Shown: in pieces, positions 3,830 to 15,780 of the stretch | How positions within the stretch are numbered: position 1 is the stretch's first letter | Layout: each line of letters opens with the position of its first letter | Source of the DNA: Eutreptiella sp. 'Long Island Sound 2002' | Lineage: Eukaryota; Protista; Euglenida | Direction of reading: 5' to 3' | Assembly: GCA_964036045.1 (NCBI GenBank) | Contig: OZ038379.1 | Coordinates: 25,730,001-25,794,000 of the forward strand | Length of the DNA stretch: 64,000 nucleotides | Notes under the pieces: generated by a model | Seen by the model: only the letters and a program-made list of their open reading frames with translations | What the model was told of the DNA's origin: nothing | Databases searched by the model: none | Program-made: the position numbers and the translations under genes

Positions 3830-4551
3830 GGTACTGGCCCCTGACATGGAGTGCCGGCACGGTATGTATCTGGGGTGCGGGTGCAGCTCAGGGCCATGGA
3901 GAAGCTAGAGTTGCTACCATGTTTCAGTACTATACTAGGGGACTGGTGCGGTGGGTCGGCGGCGTACATTATGGGGACATGGAGGCGATGAAGGCTGAGG
4001 GCCAGGCTAGGCTGGAACCTCCCAGAAATCCTGGCTATGCATCTACGGGTTATTGCATGCTGGCAGTGGGTTACGCGGGGTCAGGGGTGGTGGGCAATTA
4101 CGAGTACGCGGCTAGCAATGGATTAGGTGAGGTCATGGGTGGTGGTCGTCTCCACGGTGGCGAGGGTACGCGAACAACGAGGGGTCTGCTCTTGCTTCGC
4201 CGCATGCGTGCTGCTTTGTACCTTGGTTGCTGCTTTGCGCCCGTAGGAGAAGCCCTTGCTTTCTGCTTGTTGCTGTGCTGCTGCGTTGTTGTGCCTTGCC
4301 CCTTTTACCCCCGGCGAACAAACGGGCCAGCGTCCGTCGCCATTGCTAATGCTAATGCTTTGCGGTCGCCACTGCCCCAAAAGCCTGGTTGGCCGGTATC
4401 CCCGGTCCTCTGGGTCCTCCGTCATGCTGTGGGCCACCTCAGGCAGCCCTGGGACCCAGGGGATCGAGCGAGGCAGGAACCACCTGTCGGCGCGAGATGC
4501 CCGGTAACTCCAGTAGACGGCATGATAAGTGGTTATGACTATGGCTATGAC

Positions 4552-4828
4552 TATGTATGTATGTATGTATGTATGTATGTATGTATGTATGTATGTATGT
4601 ATGTATGTATGTATGTATGTATGTATGTATGTATGTATGTATGTATGTATGTATGTATGTATGTATGTATGTATGTATGTATGTATGTATGTATGTATGT
4701 ATGTATGTATGTATGTATGTATGTATGTATGTATGTATGTATGTATGTATGTATGTATGTATGTATGTATGTACGTATGTATGTATGTATGTATTTATGT
4801 ATGTATGTATGTATGTATGTATGTATGT
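4552..4828 (+). repeat. (TATG)n microsatellite, about 69 units
   Basis: Directly visible, with two single-base interruptions near 4773 and 4796. Confidence 0.99.
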
Positions 4829-6215
4829 TTTCCCGGGGGTGGGGGGGGGGGGGCAACTGGGGATTTTTGGGGGACTGGCGAGTTTTTGCACTGTTGGTTG
4901 TTTTCTCGGAATATGGTGTCCCGGAAGGGGGAGGGGGTATATCATACCTTCTTGGAAAGCCCTTGAAAAGGGCATTTCGGCGATGTATGGGTTGGGGGAG
5001 GGCAAGTGTTTGGGAAATTTGCCCGAAACTGTCAACAGTTTCGGTGTCTAATGTAAGCCAATTTCCTGGTACCAGTATTTGCTATTGTCTTGCGCCACAC
5101 CCCCTTGGCTCTCCCATTTGGGTTTTCATGTGGAGACGGAGCGGGAAACCAGACCAACAAACAAACCGTTTTGAAGCCACGTGTATGGGTTGCCCGAACT
5201 TGCATTTCAACATATCGATGAGTTAGACCCCAAATCAAAATGCATTAGAAAGCCCTTTTTGTTTACTTTTCAAAAAGGTATCACATTGCATAGCACCAAG
5301 ACACAGAGCGGTGAAACCTCCATTAGTTCCCTGGTTGCCCCCACCCCCCACGAAAACAGACATATATACACAATGATGCATCCATATATGGCGTAGATCC
5401 ACTAATGTATCTACCGGTGCGGGGTCACTGGGTGGGGTCTGGGACGGAAGTACGGACCCCCCCCCATTTTGGGGTCGGGAAAAAAAGACATGTCTTAGAA
5501 GTGAATTGGATGATTGTTAGTGGGTATTTGCCCCTGTGAAGGACTCACAATGGCTAAAAAATGGGTATGCTGTCACTACTATTAGGATCCTTACCAGATT
5601 ATATGGTATATACCATCCTTCCCCCCCCCTTTGCCCTCCCCCCCCTGGGGCTCCGAGGGACTTGCATATTGGGGGCCGATATGCAAGAATGCCATCCCTT
5701 AACACCCCGTTTACCCGGGTACCCTCCCGCTTACCCGTGGATCAAAGGAATTGCCGCCCGTAGTCTGTAGACACTGCTTGCCCCATGTAGACACTGTTTG
5801 TAAATTGTAGACGCTGTCAGCATGTTGCAGAAGGCGGTGCACAGACCAGACGGTGCACAAAAAGGCAGTCTATAGCCACCGCAAGAGTCTTGTCATTTAA
5901 GGGGGGGGTGCAGGAGCCGGCCCCCGCGTCAAGCGCAGCGAGCCACAGCGTGGTAAGGATTGGCGGTGCACACAGAAGGCGGTGCATACAAAAGTGAGAA
6001 TATTTGGGACAGGGGCCAAAGGCCTCCATCCGGAAAACGAGATGCTAAGGGTGTTTACCCGTGCTAAAATAAGGTATTTGGGGCTGCAAAGCACCCCTGG
6101 GCCGGCGCCAAAGGCGCTAGACCGAGTTCCGGACCCCCAAGGGGGGCGGCAGAGAGGGGGGAGGGGTCAAGGATCGTATAAGCCACATACATACATGCTA
6201 TGGCTATTGATTATT

Positions 6216-7712
6216 GAGCAGCAGAGGATTGGTAGCGGGACACAAGAAAACTTGTCAAAGAAAAGACATGTCAATTCCAACCTGTGCACAGTTGCATACC
6301 GCGTGAAATAAACTTGGTGATGTTCACTTCAGCACAATGTGGTCCTATGTACAGTGGGTTTCGTTCCTGTGTCTTATTGGGAGAGGAGCTACAATTATTT
6401 TCATGCAATGTCTAAGTTCAAGGGGGCACTGCGGTGCCCCCCACAGGGTACAAACAGGTATAGCGCACGTGGGCGACCAAATGGGCAGCCACTAGTCAAC
6501 CGAGGAGTCAGACTCAGGCGTGGTCATGGCCTGCAGGTTCAGCCACGCGATAGCATCAGGGCAGTCCATGGTTAGGATGCCCTGCTGCCACATAGCCTGA
6601 GTGGGCGGTGTGGTGTGCCGGTAGTGATGGTGCACATCATACCTGTACTTTTGGTACAGCCACAGATCGTCAGCAAGCAGGCTGTCCAGTTGGCGCGCTT
6701 CGTGGTGGCCTAGTATTAACCCCTTGTATGGTTCGATTTCCTGCTGCCACCAGTGCTGCACCAGCGCAGTCTGCTCCAGAGATGCCGTCGCACCGACGGG
6801 AGCAAGGGTGGACGGGGGCGAGGAGGAAGTGGAACTACTAACGCTAGGGCATACACTTTCGGCATCGGTTAGGGCGTGTGGCAGATCATCCAGAGGTAGC
6901 GGCATGGGGTCTGGGGTATGGGGGGGGGGGGGTTCTCGTGGCCTGGGGGGCGCGCGGGGCCTCACGACTGTGGCAGTGCGTGGTGGCCTACCTCGCCGTT
7001 TCGTCGGCACTGTGGACTGCTGTGCATCCGGGGGTGGGGGAGGGTAACCCAGCCTTCTGGTCAACCGTGGGCGCTGTGAGTTTGGTGGCAGGGGGGCTGG
7101 CTGGCGCTGCTTTCTCGCTGGGCGTTTGCGCACAGTGAGTCTGCGTGTCCTACGGCGCGCTGGTCGTGCCCGTTTGCGGGCCGTGGGCGCTGGTGTGCCA
7201 TGTTTTCGGGTGTGGTGCCGCATTTCTGGTGGCACGTGTTGGACAGGCAACGTGACAGCTTCCTTCAGGGGGATCAGGGGGACTCCCGCAGTGGCCAAGT
7301 GGCGGATGGTCGCACGGCAGTCACTGTCCTGGGGGAGGGCAATAGGGCAGGGGGTGTATTGGGGGCACAGAAGACACTGTTTTGCAGGCACTGGGGGTAT
7401 CCATCTGGGGTCCTTCTTTAACTTCGCCCATGGGGTAATGGCATCGGACCTGAGGTATGCTTTTCGTACAGGGCTCACCCACCAGGACATGGGATACCCG
7501 CGGTGTATCAGTTCCCATACCACCTGGGAGAAGTTGGACTCGGTGAAAGGCGGGTCAGTAGTGATACTCGCGGCCTTCTTGGACAGTGCAATTGCCAGGC
7601 CGTGCACTGTGTCGCGGGCTGTGCTCGTGTGGGGGTCGGGGAAACGGAGGATGGTGGGGTTGTCGGTGAGGTAGCCAGCCAGGACTTTATTTTTCATGCC
7701 CCAGCGGATGTT
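6216..7712 (-). repeat. 3' pseudo-LTR copy (about 1.5 kb)
   Basis: Matches 13166-14663. On reading I saw only 2 substitutions (13982, about 14170) and one extra G in a poly-G run. Confidence 0.95.
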
Positions 7713-10700
7713 CGGGCCCTCGCACTGCACTTGGACTTCCAAAAACGTGAGGGACCGTCCCATTTGCTCAAAATCAAGGTCTAACTCGTACAAGTCCGTA
7801 AAAAACTTTTTCAGGTGGTGGGTCCAATATGGGACGAACTGCAGAGGACAGAAAAACATGAGGTTATCGCGAAAGCGGGCCAATCGTAGGCTGAGCGGGA
7901 AGGTACTGCCCCAGCGGACCTCAGACTCAGGCAACATCAAGCATAGGTCGGCGTCTTGCGCACTGAGGAGGCCCCCAATGGCGGCCCCTTCTGTTTGGCG
8001 CCTGAGCTCCGAACCCGTAACGAAAAAATCGTTTAAGAAGAGATTCAGGAGCGCAAGCTCTAAACACTCCTGCGCAGTGTACACGTGCCAGAGGTTTGCG
8101 CCCTTGGCTCCTACCTCGTCCAGTTTCTTGTTGGCTGACTTGCTGATGCTGAAATTTACCTCCTTTGTACCTCTCTGTAGGTCCAACATGGGTTTCCACC
8201 GTTCGTACAGTTTTTTCCTAGCGGCAATGATCTTTTGTTTTTTGAGGGAGGGGAACATACGCACAACGTCCAGTTCCCCCCCCCCGACTGGTATCCCTTG
8301 GGCGCTGTAGAACTCTCGCGCGGGTTTCAGGAACCCTTCAATCAGGTGCTCCTGATTTAGCACGTTCAGGGTGAAGAAGGAGCAAGTGTAGCGGCGTTCA
8401 AGGAGTGAGCTGATTCTTGAGGCATGGCGGAACTGGGGGTTGAGGGGGTGGCCGGCGTGCGAGAAAACTTCACGGGTGGCCACATCGCGCGAGGGCTTCA
8501 CGGGGATACTTTTTTGTTTTGCCAGGCCCTCGGTAGTTGGCACTTTCCACTTTCCATGGCGCGCCGGCAGGTGTAGGGAATCGGGGGGACCCAGGCCCAG
8601 GTCACGTGCGCGGGCAGACGTGTGCTGAAATACCTGCTCCGCATGGGAGACGAGCAGGTCTCGAGCTTTGGCAGCCTCAGCCTCGGAGGTGGGGACAATC
8701 GTGCACATCTTGGGCGGGGGGGGGAGGCGGGCAGCCTTGAGCCAGGGCATGTTTAGGGTGAGGTTGCGGCGGAGCCTTCGGGGTGGTACGTACTTGCGCA
8801 GGACGGGGAAAGTCAGCGCCAAGTAGTAGTAGTACAACAGGAGGATGGAGCGGCATGCCTCCGGGGAAGAGTACGTGCGGTACAGGGTGTACTCAGGGCG
8901 GTCATAAGCGTTTAGGATGATCTGGACCCAAAACCTCCAACAAAACAAGACATAGCACAAACAGTTTTTGTCAAGGAATATCACTCTTAACCGGGGGTGG
9001 TCCTTTTTAAACCGGCGGGTGAGCGGTACCGTGGGGGGTGTGGCATGTGGAGTTGGGTTGTGGGTGCAAGCTAGCTTGATCTGGTCCTGGACAGCATCAG
9101 CAAACTTGGGAAAGGGGAATGGGCGACGTTTGGGCAGGGCGGAGTGTAGTGTCCTGAGCGCTTCGCTTGTTGCACGGCATAACTCCCGAGGGGTTTTAGA
9201 CAGGACAAAGTCACTGCCCACGTCGAAGACCGAGGAGAATCGGGGGCTTGTCACGTGGCGTATCTCCTCCCTGGTGAACCACGCAGGCGTAGGGCAGGCG
9301 CATTCAAGCTGTGGGGCCGTGCATGGGGTGGTCGTGGCTATGTTGGGTTGTGTGTGTAACTGGCTGGCACACGGGGTACTATGTGTCAGGGACTGTCTGA
9401 GGTCAGCCAGAGAGGACGTAACCCGTCCATCGGAAAGGAGGCGGGACAGCTTGCAGGGAGAGCAAAGTACAACTGAGAAAATAGAAGCCAAGTATGTACA
9501 CATGACGGCCGGCAACTTTGTGGATCGCAGGAAGTCACGGAACAGACGTTTCACAGGCTTTTTCACAGCGGGGTCCTGAACGGGCAGGCGCAGGGGGAGG
9601 GATTTCGGCAGGCGGACCCCAGTTTGTCTCTGGATGTAAGGGAGCAGTTTCCCCTGTAGGGCAGAGAACTGGTGTGGCGCCATGTCACGGCGGGCCAGGG
9701 AAAGAATTTTCAGGGCGTCCTGGGGCCGCACTGTCGCGCGGCTGGACTGCTGAAGCTTGGTCCACACATCAGGGTCACGCAGTGTGGCAAGAGGCAGGGC
9801 CTTTGACATGTTGCCGCGCACCAGCCACCGAAAATAGGATCGTCGCCGATGACGCTGCTCGTTCAGGTTGGGCGTGACGTTTTGAATAAAACGGCGCTCT
9901 ATGAGATCGGTATTGCATATGTCAGTGGGGAGGAGGGGAATGGGATTGAAATTCCACGGGCCCAACGCGTGCATGGCTCTGATGTAGAGCGGTCCTTGGG
10001 ACATCTTTCCCTGGTACATCACGACCCACGACTGGGCGCTGCCAATTTCCTCGAGTACCCTGTCCGTGACGGATCGGGGCTGGGAGATAGCACCAGTCTG
10101 GCCAAAGTACTGGCGGGGGTCCAGCGGTGTCCATACAGCATACACCCACTGGGCTTTCGTGTCGATGTCATGGGCAGTGGGCCAGTGGACGAGCTGTGCC
10201 AATCGGCGGAGCCAATGCTGGGGTGCCAGGGGGAGGACCTCGTTGCAGCGGCGCCATGACGCGACCAGGTGTTGTCGGCAGACTGGCCGGGTACCGAGTG
10301 TGGTCTTCCGGGATGTCCACTCTGCATTCCAGGTGTGCCAGAACAATGCCTTGCCACTAGTGTCCAGTGGCACATAGTAGTACGGGCTGGATGCCTGGTA
10401 CGGGTTGGGCAGTGTGGTCTGGGTACACAGGACACGACCCGCAGGTTCCGGTTTGTCGCGTGGGGCTCTGGGGATGTGGATCTTCAGGGCCCGTAGGATA
10501 GGACCCAGGTGCGCAACAATGAGCTGGAAGTGGACAGGGCCCAGAGCTGCAGCAGCAGGATTTTGGAGGAGGAAGCCACGGAGACGGAAGCTCCCTCCGC
10601 ATACGGGTCCATCCATGAAAGTATAGTGGTGGTACGCCGCGTGTGTCGCATGCCACAAGGGGGGATCGTGCATCCAGTGTTCCGGAATGATACATGCTAC

Positions 10701-11615
10701 ACGCACTGGGCAGGGTAGGCGGAGGGTACGCAGGATGTCGGCAGCGGGCCCATGGATGGCCATTGGGGTATCCCAGGACAGTGGGATGTACAACGCGCAA
10801 CAATATTGTCGCTTGCGGGCGAAAGCGTAGGTGGTGGACCAAGAGCCAAAGTCGATGGCCGCTTGGTTCGGGAACTGGCTAAATGGCAGTTCAGTACGTA
10901 TGTGGGGCGGGACGTCGACAGCCAGGTCAACGCCAAATACGAGACGGGCGGCACGCTCAAATTTCCGTCTGTGGCGGGGGTGCATGGCACGTGGTGTGGA
11001 GGTGGCATATGGGCGGCTGGGGGGGGAATGCATGGCAGTAACTTGTTGACGAACACGTTCAGCTGCCGAGGGATGGGGCAGATGCAGGCTGGGGTTCGGT
11101 AGTTCACTGGCGTTGACGAGTTGCAGGGGGAAAGTCGTCAGGACCCATTCGAGCAGGCACCGATAGAAGAGGACGCAGTGCATAGCAGTACATTGCAGCC
11201 ACGTCGTGAGTGGTACAGATGCGGCGTACCCGAGCCATAGCCGGCGTACAGCCCCGAAGCGGTATGCGAGTGACCCAATTTGGGGCACCAGTGGTACATT
11301 CTGCGGGTACGGGCTCTGTAAATCAAAGGCGGCGGGTGTACTCGCTGACGACTGCTGCATGTGGAGTTCTGTGACCCTAAGTTCCTGAAGGAGCTTGTGG
11401 CGTAGTCTTTCCGCGTCCACCAGGGGCTGAAGGCAGTGTAGTGTACTGCGGGGGACGCGACCTCGGGACAGGGCTTCCTGGACAGGACAGTGAGTCAGCG
11501 GTACGCAAGCCGTCATGCCCTCTAGACACGTCCAGCGGCACGTGGGTACCGTCCAGCGAGTTAAGAACGTCCAGAGATCGGGGCTATTCGCTGGGAGGTC
11601 ACCCACTAAGCGCAT
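6492..11615 (-). CDS. PLE polyprotein: PCIF1-like domain, GIY-YIG endonuclease, CxC linker, reverse transcriptase, thumb, AT-hook (1707 aa)
   Basis: GIY-YIG: WVYAVW...QYFGQTG...DRVLEE...IERRFIQNVTPNLN (about 10150-9860), with no CCHH insert. CxC: ECACP (9294-9305). RT: FLDKN, REVFSH..HP, ELDVVRMFPSL, RQTEGAAIGGLLS, RFRDN, TFLEV. PLE thumb: ELIHRGYP. AT-hook: KRRGRPPR (6978-7001). No frameshift. Confidence 0.92.
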   Translation of the reverse strand: MRLVGDLPANSPDLWTFLTRWTVPTCRWTCLEGMTACVPLTHCPVQEALSRGRVPRSTLHCLQPLVDAERLRHKLLQELRVTELHMQQSSASTPAAFDLQSPYPQNVPLVPQIGSLAYRFGAVRRLWLGYAASVPLTTWLQCTAMHCVLFYRCLLEWVLTTFPLQLVNASELPNPSLHLPHPSAAERVRQQVTAMHSPPSRPYATSTPRAMHPRHRRKFERAARLVFGVDLAVDVPPHIRTELPFSQFPNQAAIDFGSWSTTYAFARKRQYCCALYIPLSWDTPMAIHGPAADILRTLRLPCPVRVACIIPEHWMHDPPLWHATHAAYHHYTFMDGPVCGGSFRLRGFLLQNPAAAALGPVHFQLIVAHLGPILRALKIHIPRAPRDKPEPAGRVLCTQTTLPNPYQASSPYYYVPLDTSGKALFWHTWNAEWTSRKTTLGTRPVCRQHLVASWRRCNEVLPLAPQHWLRRLAQLVHWPTAHDIDTKAQWVYAVWTPLDPRQYFGQTGAISQPRSVTDRVLEEIGSAQSWVVMYQGKMSQGPLYIRAMHALGPWNFNPIPLLPTDICNTDLIERRFIQNVTPNLNEQRHRRRSYFRWLVRGNMSKALPLATLRDPDVWTKLQQSSRATVRPQDALKILSLARRDMAPHQFSALQGKLLPYIQRQTGVRLPKSLPLRLPVQDPAVKKPVKRLFRDFLRSTKLPAVMCTYLASIFSVVLCSPCKLSRLLSDGRVTSSLADLRQSLTHSTPCASQLHTQPNIATTTPCTAPQLECACPTPAWFTREEIRHVTSPRFSSVFDVGSDFVLSKTPRELCRATSEALRTLHSALPKRRPFPFPKFADAVQDQIKLACTHNPTPHATPPTVPLTRRFKKDHPRLRVIFLDKNCLCYVLFCWRFWVQIILNAYDRPEYTLYRTYSSPEACRSILLLYYYYLALTFPVLRKYVPPRRLRRNLTLNMPWLKAARLPPPPKMCTIVPTSEAEAAKARDLLVSHAEQVFQHTSARARDLGLGPPDSLHLPARHGKWKVPTTEGLAKQKSIPVKPSRDVATREVFSHAGHPLNPQFRHASRISSLLERRYTCSFFTLNVLNQEHLIEGFLKPAREFYSAQGIPVGGGELDVVRMFPSLKKQKIIAARKKLYERWKPMLDLQRGTKEVNFSISKSANKKLDEVGAKGANLWHVYTAQECLELALLNLFLNDFFVTGSELRRQTEGAAIGGLLSAQDADLCLMLPESEVRWGSTFPLSLRLARFRDNLMFFCPLQFVPYWTHHLKKFFTDLYELDLDFEQMGRSLTFLEVQVQCEGPNIRWGMKNKVLAGYLTDNPTILRFPDPHTSTARDTVHGLAIALSKKAASITTDPPFTESNFSQVVWELIHRGYPMSWWVSPVRKAYLRSDAITPWAKLKKDPRWIPPVPAKQCLLCPQYTPCPIALPQDSDCRATIRHLATAGVPLIPLKEAVTLPVQHVPPEMRHHTRKHGTPAPTARKRARPARRRTRRLTVRKRPARKQRQPAPLPPNSQRPRLTRRLGYPPPPPDAQQSTVPTKRRGRPPRTATVVRPRAPPRPREPPPPHTPDPMPLPLDDLPHALTDAESVCPSVSSSTSSSPPSTLAPVGATASLEQTALVQHWWQQEIEPYKGLILGHHEARQLDSLLADDLWLYQKYRYDVHHHYRHTTPPTQAMWQQGILTMDCPDAIAWLNLQAMTTPESDSSVD

Positions 11616-11681
11616 CTGGCTGCAGCTGCAGAAGTGCAGTGTGGTCGGGTGGGCAAAAATTGCATTGTCCCCATGCCGCTC

Positions 11682-12983
11682 CTAGCTGGCAGTGGCCAGG
11701 TTGAGTGCAGCCACTTCGTCCATGAATGAGTCAAAGGGGCATGTGGTGTGGCTATCGAAACACAGCTGCCCGTCAGCACCATAAGGGATCACCCGGGGTG
11801 TTGCTTTACTCTGGGCGCTCTTATCGGTGGGGAGGGCTGGGATCATGACCTTAACGGCACGGCGTTGTCTGCCATCGTCGCCTTCCTTCACCACAACCCA
11901 TGCATCAACCGGGGCAGGGCCCATGTCGAAGGGGATGTCTTTAGGGCGCCTCATGAATATGTACGAGGGGCTGGCAGTGGGCGTCGTAGTTGTCCCAAAG
12001 GCAGGTTGCGTACCCGTGGAAGGTGTCGATCCAGACGAGGCTTCGGCAGATTGCTCGGCCGCACGATCGGCCCGTAGCGCATTGATGATGTCGCCCGTCA
12101 TGGTGCCCATGCGCGTGTTGATACTAGTGATGTCCGTGCGGATGCCCTGCACATCGCCTTCGATTTTCTGGAACCGGGCCTCGTACGGGTCGTCAGTGGG
12201 TGCGGCGTCGAGCACCATTGCGTCCGGGGTATTCGGCGCCGTGGCGGTCTGTGGTTTCGCTGGTGTAGTGGGTGCCGTGAGGTTGAGGCCAATCGGCTCC
12301 TCAGGGTCATCGGCGATATGCAGGCCTTCAGGTTCAGCCACGGGTTGGGCATTGATCGCCGTGACGATGACCTTCGACTTGCCGTCTTTCAGTCCACCCA
12401 GTCGTTTTGCCACGGCCTGTTGCGCTGCCGGCGAAGCTGTACCAAAGACCAGGGCACGTGAGTTTTGCCGATATATCTTCATGGCCTCCGGGATGTTCTT
12501 GGTGACCCACTTCTCATCGGAGTCGGTGACGTCACGGTTGAACACGAGCGAGATGCCGTTCGCCGTGTTCTGCTTCTGCAGCGCCTCGGCTTTCTCCGGG
12601 AAGATGGAGGCCAGGAGATCGCGTAACTCAACCTGGACGTTGATGTCGGAGGCACTGGGCGCGTTGTGCTGCGCGGGACTCCGACCAGTAGATCCGGCAG
12701 ACGAGCGTGGGGCATTACGGCACTCGTGTGGTTCATGGCCCACCCAGCGGCCTTCCTTGTCGTGATAAGGACACCAGATGCGGGGGCCTCCGGTAGGCCA
12801 CGTGCCATCGCGAGTGCCCGGGGTTGGTACTGGGGAGTTGGAGCGTCGGGAGCGTTCAGGGCGGTAGCCGCCCTCGGATCGTTGCGAGCCTTCGCCGTCG
12901 CGTCTCTCGCCGTTCCGCTTGTTGGGGCAGTCGTAGGACAGGTGGCCATAGCCTTTACACTCGTAGCATTGTCGTTGGGACAT
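11682..12983 (-). CDS. PLE upstream ORF, nucleic-acid-binding (CCHC zinc knuckle, RRM-like segment, coiled coil), 433 aa
   Basis: CYECKGYGHLSYDC is CX2CX4HX4C at the N-terminus, followed by a second Cys/His cluster WCPYH..GHEPHEC. RRM-like segment ISLVF..ALVFGTASPAAQQAVAKRLGGLKDGKSKVIVTA (about 12560-12350). Heptad-like EARFQKIEGDVQGIRTDITSINTRM. It lies between the pseudo-LTR and the RT ORF. Confidence 0.85.
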   Translation of the reverse strand: MSQRQCYECKGYGHLSYDCPNKRNGERRDGEGSQRSEGGYRPERSRRSNSPVPTPGTRDGTWPTGGPRIWCPYHDKEGRWVGHEPHECRNAPRSSAGSTGRSPAQHNAPSASDINVQVELRDLLASIFPEKAEALQKQNTANGISLVFNRDVTDSDEKWVTKNIPEAMKIYRQNSRALVFGTASPAAQQAVAKRLGGLKDGKSKVIVTAINAQPVAEPEGLHIADDPEEPIGLNLTAPTTPAKPQTATAPNTPDAMVLDAAPTDDPYEARFQKIEGDVQGIRTDITSINTRMGTMTGDIINALRADRAAEQSAEASSGSTPSTGTQPAFGTTTTPTASPSYIFMRRPKDIPFDMGPAPVDAWVVVKEGDDGRQRRAVKVMIPALPTDKSAQSKATPRVIPYGADGQLCFDSHTTCPFDSFMDEVAALNLATAS

Positions 12984-13020
12984 AGCGAATAGAGTAGGCG
13001 CTGGAAGGAAAAAATAGGCA
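12984..13020 (-). promoter_or_regulatory. Candidate 3' splice acceptor / spliced-leader trans-splice acceptor upstream of PLE ORF1
   Basis: Minus strand reads TGCCTATTTTTTCCTTCCAG|CGCCTACTCTATTCGCT-ATG: a pyrimidine tract plus CAG, 17 nt before the ORF1 ATG. Confidence 0.5.
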
Positions 13021-13165
13021 AAATACCCAGGGGCGAACTAGGCGATGGAGATGTCTGAGTGTCGGTACGTTGATGTCACTGTACCCAAATACGTGCTGTA
13101 ACTCAATGCCAGGATAATGCGTATTGTCAACGCTGCAGAACACGCAGCTCGGTACGCCGGTCGAA

Positions 13166-14663
13166 GAGCAGCAGAGGATTGGTAGCGGGACACAAGAAAA
13201 CTTGTCAAAGAAAAGACATGTCAATTCCAACCTGTGCACAGTTGCATACCGCGTGAAATAAACTTGGTGATGTTCACTTCAGCACAATGTGGTCCTATGT
13301 ACAGTGGGTTTCGTTCCTGTGTCTTATTGGGAGAGGAGCTACAATTATTTTCATGCAATGTCTAAGTTCAAGGGGGCACTGCGGTGCCCCCCACAGGGTA
13401 CAAACAGGTATAGCGCACGTGGGCGACCAAATGGGCAGCCACTAGTCAACCGAGGAGTCAGACTCAGGCGTGGTCATGGCCTGCAGGTTCAGCCACGCGA
13501 TAGCATCAGGGCAGTCCATGGTTAGGATGCCCTGCTGCCACATAGCCTGAGTGGGCGGTGTGGTGTGCCGGTAGTGATGGTGCACATCATACCTGTACTT
13601 TTGGTACAGCCACAGATCGTCAGCAAGCAGGCTGTCCAGTTGGCGCGCTTCGTGGTGGCCTAGTATTAACCCCTTGTATGGTTCGATTTCCTGCTGCCAC
13701 CAGTGCTGCACCAGCGCAGTCTGCTCCAGAGATGCCGTCGCACCGACGGGAGCAAGGGTGGACGGGGGCGAGGAGGAAGTGGAACTACTAACGCTAGGGC
13801 ATACACTTTCGGCATCGGTTAGGGCGTGTGGCAGATCATCCAGAGGTAGCGGCATGGGGTCTGGGGTATGGGGGGGGGGGGGGTTCTCGTGGCCTGGGGG
13901 GCGCGCGGGGCCTCACGACTGTGGCAGTGCGTGGTGGCCTACCTCGCCGTTTCGTCGGCACTGTGGACTGCTGTGCATCCGAGGGTGGGGGAGGGTAACC
14001 CAGCCTTCTGGTCAACCGTGGGCGCTGTGAGTTTGGTGGCAGGGGGGCTGGCTGGCGCTGCTTTCTCGCTGGGCGTTTGCGCACAGTGAGTCTGCGTGTC
14101 CTACGGCGCGCTGGTCGTGCCCGTTTGCGGGCCGTGGGCGCTGGTGTGCCATGTTTTCGGGTGTGGTGCTGCATTTCTGGTGGCACGTGTTGGACAGGCA
14201 ACGTGACAGCTTCCTTCAGGGGGATCAGGGGGACTCCCGCAGTGGCCAAGTGGCGGATGGTCGCACGGCAGTCACTGTCCTGGGGGAGGGCAATAGGGCA
14301 GGGGGTGTATTGGGGGCACAGAAGACACTGTTTTGCAGGCACTGGGGGTATCCATCTGGGGTCCTTCTTTAACTTCGCCCATGGGGTAATGGCATCGGAC
14401 CTGAGGTATGCTTTTCGTACAGGGCTCACCCACCAGGACATGGGATACCCGCGGTGTATCAGTTCCCATACCACCTGGGAGAAGTTGGACTCGGTGAAAG
14501 GCGGGTCAGTAGTGATACTCGCGGCCTTCTTGGACAGTGCAATTGCCAGGCCGTGCACTGTGTCGCGGGCTGTGCTCGTGTGGGGGTCGGGGAAACGGAG
14601 GATGGTGGGGTTGTCGGTGAGGTAGCCAGCCAGGACTTTATTTTTCATGCCCCAGCGGATGTT
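13166..14663 (-). repeat. 5' pseudo-LTR (5'-truncated tandem copy of the element's 3' end)
   Basis: Begins inside the RT/thumb coding sequence (NIRWGMKNK) and runs through the stop and 3' UTR into the unique 5' region. The poly-G indel frameshifts this copy. Confidence 0.95.
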
Positions 14664-15780
14664 GGTTTCTAGGTCCTTTCGATGTACTGTTTGGATTACT
14701 GTGACGGGGAACAGACACTGTGTTGATGATGATTGTTTCTTTGGATTCCTGTCCTACCCTCATTTCGTGTTTCAACAACGACCACCCCATTACTTGGGTG
14801 GTCTGTACATTGGTTGACCACCCACGCACCAGCACCAGGGTGGTCATGGGATAAATCTAGCGGTGTAGCAAAATGTGAAAAGTAGGAAAGTGTTTGTATG
14901 TGGATACTTTTCATCCTTGTAGTACAACACGAAGAGTCAGTGTGCAATGTAATTTTTCAGCAAGAATATCAAGGGCACAGGTCGTTAGCAATTCCCGCAA
15001 TTGTTGCGGAAGTGGACAACCACCCAGGTACCTGGGTGTCCAAATTCATAAAAAAGGAAAAACCATCAAAATTTCAAAATGCAAAAATAGAAAAAAACAT
15101 ATTTTCAAAAAAAAGCCCGGCACCTAGGTGGTCCAACTTTTCAAGTTTTTGCAAAACATATCACTGAATGAAGAAAAAAAAACTCATGCACTATGTGCAC
15201 CCCCAAGTGAAAAGCTAGGTTGCCCAAGTGGAGGGAAAACAGGGGGTAGGTAGCCTCCAGAGATTCAAGCAAAGAGAACATGTGCGAAGCGACTTTTGCG
15301 TTGATGCGGTGCCAATGTGATCCATCCAACACACCAGGGCATATGTACCGAAGGTGGCAAAACTGTGGCCCATTTGGTGAAGGGCCCATGACAGTGGCCA
15401 ACAGATGTGCACCTAGTGTGTGTGAGTGGTACCGTACACGGTCACCGGGAGAAAACATCTTGGGTCTGAAATAGCAACACAACACACCCATACAGCACCT
15501 TTGGAGACAGAATACCACTGAACACACACAGGTGCTTGATTTGAAGTAATGGGAAAGCAATGCAAGGCCATGCGGAAAGCAGATGGGCAACACAAACGAG
15601 CGCAATACATGTTCACCAGAAAAACATGGAAGTGACAGCCTGCCGGCGGGGGGGGATTGCAAGGGGTGGGAGATTGCAAGGGGGGGGGGGGGGCGGGGTA
15701 CTATCCGACTTTCTGCACGGCACCATCCAACTCACTGCATGTACCGCATGGTACACTTGCAGTAAGTTGGTGGACATTAC

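Follow-up and report, generated by a model that had tools for sequence, protein, structure and literature searches.

The closest described systems to the locus analyzed here are the cap-adenosine N6-methyltransferase PCIF1/CAPAM (PF12237; PDB 6IRV-6IS0) and, among mobile elements, the Chlamys and Naiad Penelope-like elements (PLEs). The accessory domains reported for the latter are PHD, SAP and Josephin-like domains, and no methyltransferase fold is among them (PMC8557442). The locus lies on the reverse strand of a 64,000-nucleotide stretch from Eutreptiella sp. 'Long Island Sound 2002' (assembly GCA_964036045.1, contig OZ038379.1, positions 25,730,001 to 25,794,000; hereafter the window) and is a multi-copy retroelement with two open reading frames (ORFs). 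A domain of its ORF2 is shown by predicted structures and profile–profile comparison to belong, as a diverged member, to the fold family of the PCIF1/CAPAM cap-adenosine N6-methyltransferases. No paper joining PCIF1 with Penelope-like elements was found in a literature search, and a PCIF1-type fold in such an element has not been reported before.

With PCIF1/CAPAM, the domain shares the methyltransferase fold (Z 13, root-mean-square deviation (rmsd) 3.1 Å, 156 residues) and the collinear sequence blocks FGS, P-x-x-x-x-x-P in strand 5 and LQNxAAxxWP at the C-terminus. It differs in having neither the WW domain nor a detectable helical domain, in the replacement of ExFASPLN, SAFxD and NPPF, in being basic instead of acidic, and in its location in a retroelement polyprotein and not in a host gene. 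The original prediction, read from the letters of the window, had named a degenerate PCIF1/CAPAM-like domain fused in front of a GIY-YIG nuclease and had quoted several strings from it. These strings are real, as translation of window 10500-10946 on the (-) strand, which corresponds to ORF2 residues 224-372, yields LVFGVDLAVDVPP, PFSQFP, DFGS, CALYIPL, DILRTL, PVRVACIIPEHWMHDPPLWH, HHYTFMDG and GFLLQNPAAA. The domain is indeed N-terminal to the GIY-YIG-like region, and the motif parallels to PCIF1 that had been drawn there agree with how hhalign aligns the domain to real PCIF1 sequences, as described below.

Two template-free AlphaFold2 (AF2) models, based on different alignments, were compared with known structures. 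Model 1 covers ORF2 residues 190-480 (12-sequence alignment) with a mean predicted local distance difference test score (pLDDT) of 73 and 80-90 in the core, and model 2 covers residues 1-480 with a mean of 62 and 70-90 in the core. In the PDB, the six best Foldseek matches are all human or zebrafish CAPAM (best E 1.7e-4). Alignment of model 1 to residues 493-673 of zebrafish CAPAM using VIA-align gave Z 13.5, with an rmsd of 3.1 Å over 156 residues, while the next class I methyltransferases, KsgA and RlmJ, reach Z ~8. Residues 208-375 of model 2 align to CAPAM at Z 12.8. When all of 48,161 representative chains were aligned exhaustively, without recourse to Foldseek, CAPAM reached Z 13.0, and only one other chain reached Z 8. 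PCIF1_WW clusters head the shape search of the ESM Atlas and giant-virus PCIF1_WW proteins that of the viral library BFVD, PCIF1/CAPAM ranking first in four libraries. An Atlas feature search with the domain was uninformative (scores up to 0.79). On these models, the assignment of a class I methyltransferase fold, nearest to the methyltransferase domain of CAPAM, holds.

For the sequence comparison, 30 true PCIF1 domains were gathered starting from the host's 490-amino-acid PCIF1 gene. Their hhalign alignment to the 12-sequence element alignment has a probability of 69%, which rises to 95.3% (E 2.3e-8) with an alignment of 14 element domains of greater diversity; the match comprises 148 collinear columns (positions 30-201 of 214). 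In controls on the match columns, 40 column-shuffled alignments and one reversed alignment score at most 18, compared to 54.5 for the real one, and the 40 shuffled alignments have probabilities of at most 0.6%. DFGS is paired with FGS, VDVPP with FASP, the YIPL loop with NPPF, PVRVACIIPE with PLSFxVVVP, and LLQN with LQN. Asn at ORF2 residue 352 is almost invariant in the family. Identity to PCIF1 is 14-16%. Neither phmmer nor profile searches of PDB sequences gave a match for the domain, for ORF2 or for the nuclease and polymerase regions, and a word-based protein search retrieved the element's own family only. The PCIF1-like domain announced by the original prediction is supported, with CAPAM first in the Foldseek search of the PDB, in VIA-align (Z 12.8-13.5 for the AlphaFold models) and in the scan of 48,161 chains, next to the 95% of hhalign.

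The hallmark motifs of PCIF1 are gone from the element domain. Of the true PCIF1 domains, 30/30 contain FASPLN and 28/30 contain NPPF; both are found in 0 element domains, and no member has [DN]PP[FYW] at the loop. The cofactor motifs ExFASPLN and SAFxD are replaced and both prolines of NPPF are lost in all lineages, so that the replacement of FASP(LN) and NPPF, previously claimed for the window copy, extends to every sister family checked. In the best alignment, the window copy retains 3/17 PCIF1-invariant positions (P237, F256 and P278). The equivalent of the catalytic loop follows the family pattern N-[AG]-x-[YW]-x-P-x-x-[WYH], with Cys for Asn in the window subfamily. DPPL, at ORF2 residues 317-320, was rejected as a catalytic motif: it comes after strand 5, away from the motif IV site, and lacks conservation at that position. 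Judging from these substitutions, the domain is probably non-catalytic.

At least eight divergent sister families of the Eutreptiella genome share the domain, with 25-37% identity. Over ORF2, sister families are 25-45% identical, and their open frames retain the N-terminal region; a full two-ORF relative with 32% identity comes from two other samples. More distant relatives have the three-helix linker and the nuclease region only, without the methyltransferase-like domain. Against a sister subfamily (synonymous divergence Ks ~0.75), the ratio of nonsynonymous to synonymous divergence (Ka/Ks) is 0.11-0.13 in the domain, 0.07-0.10 in the nuclease-like region, 0.05-0.09 where the polymerase region begins and 0.21-0.23 in the linker. 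The domain is under strong purifying selection. Element domains have an isoelectric point (pI) of 7.3-10.5, versus a median of 6.1 for PCIF1 domains.

The explanation that we prefer, and to which we give moderate confidence, is that a diverged PCIF1-type fold in a PLE polyprotein no longer methylates and is now a nucleic-acid-binding or scaffolding module. An analogous case is METTL14, a catalytically dead partner that supports METTL3, in which a methyltransferase fold with a degenerate motif serves as an RNA-binding scaffold. By functional analogy, the element domain may likewise be a dead methyltransferase fold retained as a binding scaffold, although METTL14 belongs to the MT-A70 subclass, pairs with an active paralogue as a heterodimer and does not come from a mobile element. 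In the retroelement, the module would act without methyl transfer, its likeliest job being a grip on template RNA or target DNA for a Chlamys-type nuclease/polymerase that has no zinc finger. The aromatic-x-Pro-x-x-aromatic pattern of the loop would fit a pocket still holding a flipped base. Chlamys nucleases are without the zinc fingers that the nucleases of other PLEs possess (PMC8557442).

Several observations weigh against this explanation. Pfam PF12237 matches none of the 12 members (hmmscan, E up to 10), and the family profile, searched against 1.84 billion proteins with HMMER, finds no PCIF1, its 30 matches all being relatives of the element. Because HMMER and Pfam see no link, homology rests on profile–profile and predicted-structure evidence. 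The register of the NPPF equivalent shifts among three hhalign runs, within the same loop. Several sister families retain Asn and an aromatic residue there (N-[AG]-x-[YW]), which would make residual chemistry possible. Finally, we infer the loss of the S-adenosylmethionine (SAM) pocket from sequence only.

A first alternative, to which we give a small probability, is that the domain recognizes a cap or 5' end, binding, on RNA made from the element itself, the modified spliced-leader cap or the adenosine next to the cap. The nearest relatives are cap-specific enzymes, and the host trans-splices. The 24-mer of the Euglena spliced leader occurs ~7,480 times genome-wide and its reversed control 0 times, which bears out the earlier statement that the host has a spliced leader. 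These sites are dispersed on both strands and far exceed a few tandem gene arrays; the dinoflagellate leader (DinoSL) sequence was not found in the genome. A dinoflagellate host was rejected for this reason, and the leader sequences identify the host as a euglenid. Against cap recognition, no spliced-leader sequence is present in the window or in the fetched element copies. CAPAM moreover clasps the cap (m7Gpp) between its helical and methyltransferase domains (PMC8287941), and ORF2 residues 1-205 yielded no detected homologue of that helical domain. Compared with the part of PCIF1 that lies upstream of its methyltransferase domain, these residues give an hhalign probability of 0.2%, the N-terminal model being of low confidence, and the structural alignments cover the methyltransferase domain only; a CAPAM-like helical domain was rejected on these grounds. 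Since the helical domain is not detected, the cap-binding idea, put forward in the original prediction, is unsupported. A more specific version, which appears slightly less probable still, is that the domain and the N-terminal helical region together read the modified 5' end of spliced-leader-capped RNA and so pick the element's own full-length, trans-spliced transcript in cis for target-primed reverse transcription. If true, a retroelement would have captured the fold of a cap-modifying enzyme and turned it into a sensor of caps.

About as improbable as cap recognition is a still-active adenine methyltransferase with an unorthodox site, which would mark element RNA, cDNA or target DNA. Strong purifying selection is compatible with such an enzyme, and several families hold both Asn and an aromatic residue in the loop. 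Retroelements have repeatedly retained adenine methyltransferase domains (PMC3266345; bioRxiv 10.64898/2026.05.21.726589), and a role in marking RNA, cDNA or target DNA has been proposed for the Dam domains that DIRS and DAM-LTR elements (LTR, long terminal repeat) carry. However, both NPPF prolines, FASPLN and SAFxD are gone in all lineages, and the window subfamily is also without the Asn, whereas Dam domains in transposable elements are reported to keep an Asn-Pro-Pro triplet (bioRxiv 10.64898/2026.05.21.726589).

Like the element domain, the Dam-type methyltransferases are an adenine-methyltransferase fold in a retroelement polyprotein, kept by selection. They differ in belonging to the family PF05869, in keeping the N-x-P-F or NPP motif, in being proposed as active and in residing in LTR/DIRS elements and not in PLEs. 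In the Eutreptiella genome, a first look gave 3,814 candidate Dam-type (PF05869) domains, which lie in long open frames; all six that were examined have the motif N-A-P-F. Kinship between these domains and the PCIF1-like domain was rejected, as the hhalign probability is 0.1% and there is no Pfam match; the statement of the original prediction that the DIRS methyltransferases are unrelated agrees with this absence of profile similarity. Structural likeness to the Dam type is present in the second row of the Atlas results and is weaker than that to PCIF1. A 2026 preprint on Dam-carrying retrotransposons (DAM-LTR/DIRS) covers Euglena, and does not cover PLEs or PCIF1 (bioRxiv 10.64898/2026.05.21.726589).

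We also consider it doubtful, a shade more so than retained activity, that the domain is a protein–protein scaffold or decoy, either for ORF2 oligomerisation or for titrating host factors that meet the host PCIF1. Pseudo-enzymes are often scaffolds, and the host holds three canonical PCIF1_WW loci; a six-frame PF12237 search of the genome retrieved these three loci, all host genes. One of them is an intronless gene for a protein of 490 amino acids with canonical FASPLN and NPPF and without a WW domain. Against a scaffold or decoy, the element domain does not have the WW domain through which PCIF1 is linked to RNA polymerase II, there is no known partner, and the basic charge favours nucleic acid. 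Least credible of all is a generic Rossmann-type methyltransferase likeness or modelling artefact without specific PCIF1 kinship: the 14-16% identity, the blank HMMER and Pfam searches and the mean pLDDT of 73 and 62 would allow it, but CAPAM is separated from all other methyltransferases by 5 Z units in the exhaustive scan, PCIF1 comes first in four separate libraries, and the hhalign score lies far over the shuffled controls with nearly the whole Pfam domain covered.

The features of the element are listed in Table 1. At the extreme N-terminus of ORF2, the W-x-V-P-x-C-x-W-x-C motif may be a metal binder.

Table 1. Features of the Eutreptiella retroelement, in window coordinates.
Feature	Position	Strand	Basis or remark
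ORF1, 433 amino acids, CCHC zinc knuckle at the N-terminus	11682..12983	(-)	ends in TAG; same frame as ORF2
ORF2, 1707 amino acids	6492..11615	(-)	two-ORF multi-copy retroelement
ORF2 N-terminal region, residues 1-190, predicted helical	11046..11615	(-)	alignment; AF2 pLDDT 30-70
W-x-V-P-x-C-x-W-x-C motif at the extreme N-terminus of ORF2	11526-11549	(-)	conserved in all families keeping the region
PCIF1/CAPAM-like methyltransferase-fold domain (predicted), ORF2 residues 208-375	10491..10994	(-)	AF2 models, VIA-align, hhalign
SAM-binding motif remnant, AVDVPPHI in place of PCIF1 ExFASPLN	10899..10922	(-)	hhalign mapping
Strand 4 and catalytic-loop equivalent, CCALYIPLSW in place of PCIF1 GSFEANPPF	10773..10802	(-)	
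LLQNPAAAALGP, C-terminal signature in common with PCIF1 (LQNxAGAxxWP)	10536..10571	(-)	hhalign
Three-helix linker, FW..W..E...R and APQxWLRRL, between methyltransferase-like domain and nuclease	10191..10355	(-)	
GIY-YIG-like endonuclease region, VYAVW...YFGQTG...R...ERRF...PNLN	9846..10154	(-)	Atlas, Pfam, pattern
FLDKNCLC, DK motif and CxC motif, upstream of the polymerase core	8955..8978	(-)	invariant
Putative reverse transcriptase core	7596..8498	(-)	motifs only
Putative reverse transcriptase motif A, ELDVVRMFPS	8247-8276	(-)	motif
Putative reverse transcriptase motif B', RQTEGAAIGG	7971-8000	(-)	motif
Putative reverse transcriptase motif C, RFRDN	7863-7877	(-)	motif
Putative reverse transcriptase motif E, LTFLE	7737-7751	(-)	motif
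Partial copy of the 3' part of the element, in tandem and upstream, pseudo-LTR	13166..14663	(-)	direct repeats and duplicated ORF2 C-terminus

The assignment of the region following the linker as a GIY-YIG-like endonuclease is moderately supported. The top three Atlas feature matches bear PF01541 with scores of 0.85-0.86, which serve as a lead only, and PF01541 is matched by 1/8 family members, weakly (E 0.024). The pattern Y...Y-x-G...R...E...N is conserved, its Y, Y-G and N being invariant; a PDB profile search with this region was blank. Across ORF2, pieces of ORF2, the 12 domain members and six relatives, Pfam gives no methyltransferase, reverse transcriptase (RT) or significant GIY-YIG match, and NCBIfam finds no family whatever in ORF2.

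Further downstream, FLDKNxxC...C is invariant in four families. The polymerase region is putatively a reverse transcriptase on the reading of its motifs, with ~85 residues between the putative motifs A and B'. In the putative motif C, Asn replaces the second catalytic Asp, and R-[FY]-[RV]-D-N is invariant in six lineages with identity down to 37%; this D-N form is kept in spite of the youth of the element and its many copies. Standard RT models are blind to the region: Pfam, NCBIfam and PDB profile searches were all blank, and hhalign against the RVT_1 set of the genome gives a probability of 0.1%. PADLOC reports two RT matches in relatives, both below threshold.

From this arrangement of motifs, the element fits a euglenid endonuclease-first, Penelope-like retroelement of the Chlamys type. 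Like the Chlamys and Naiad PLEs (PMC8557442), it has a GIY-YIG-like N-terminal region, a block with DK and CxC motifs and a wide spacing of the putative motifs A and B'; pseudo-LTRs arise from partial tandem copies in both, and a zinc-knuckle ORF lies upstream as in Chlamys-2_cBra. It differs from them by ~480 extra N-terminal residues that include the PCIF1-like domain, by the D-N form of its polymerase motif C, and by its euglenid host, a group not listed in PMC8557442.

The pseudo-LTR organization is visible as direct repeats of 6216-6515 with 13166-13465 and of 6920-7219 with 13871-14170, with a period of ~6950 bp. A single TAG separates ORF1 from ORF2 in one shared frame. On the (-) strand of window 11615-11684, this TAG is followed by 22 sense codons and then by the in-frame ATG of ORF2, an arrangement that, as read from the sequence, is compatible with stop-codon readthrough or reinitiation. 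The 2.28-Gb genome contains at least 19 copies of the element, with 96-100% protein identity over the domain, and at least six near-identical copies have an intact open frame of 1729 codons. As the full frame is open in six copies, the element has been recently active. An Rfam search of window 5800-14900 (E up to 1) found no hammerhead and no other family. PLEs are said to favour microsatellite targets. A long microsatellite with an 8-bp period is located at window 4484-4860, ~1.4 kb past the 3' terminus of the element.

Matches to the element also occur in environmental data. Three estuary metagenome DNA runs have contigs with at least half of the words sampled from 10176-11615, and contigs of one run match the element (window 10000-13200) at 95% identity or more. 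In an estuary metatranscriptome, three short contigs match ORF1 and the start of ORF2, which is not proof of transcription. The estuary contigs hint that the element is present in the environment and perhaps expressed.

Among the classes of retrotransposons, Penelope-like elements are the least understood, and their accessory domains hint at how template and target are found. Together with the Dam-type domains, the PCIF1-like domain shows that retroelements of one genome co-opted adenine-methyltransferase folds at least twice, one keeping the catalytic motif and one losing it. The case would be a natural experiment on a methyltransferase fold without its chemistry, and the conserved Y-x-P-x-x-W loop may provide a handle on how GIY-YIG elements devoid of zinc fingers engage nucleic acid.

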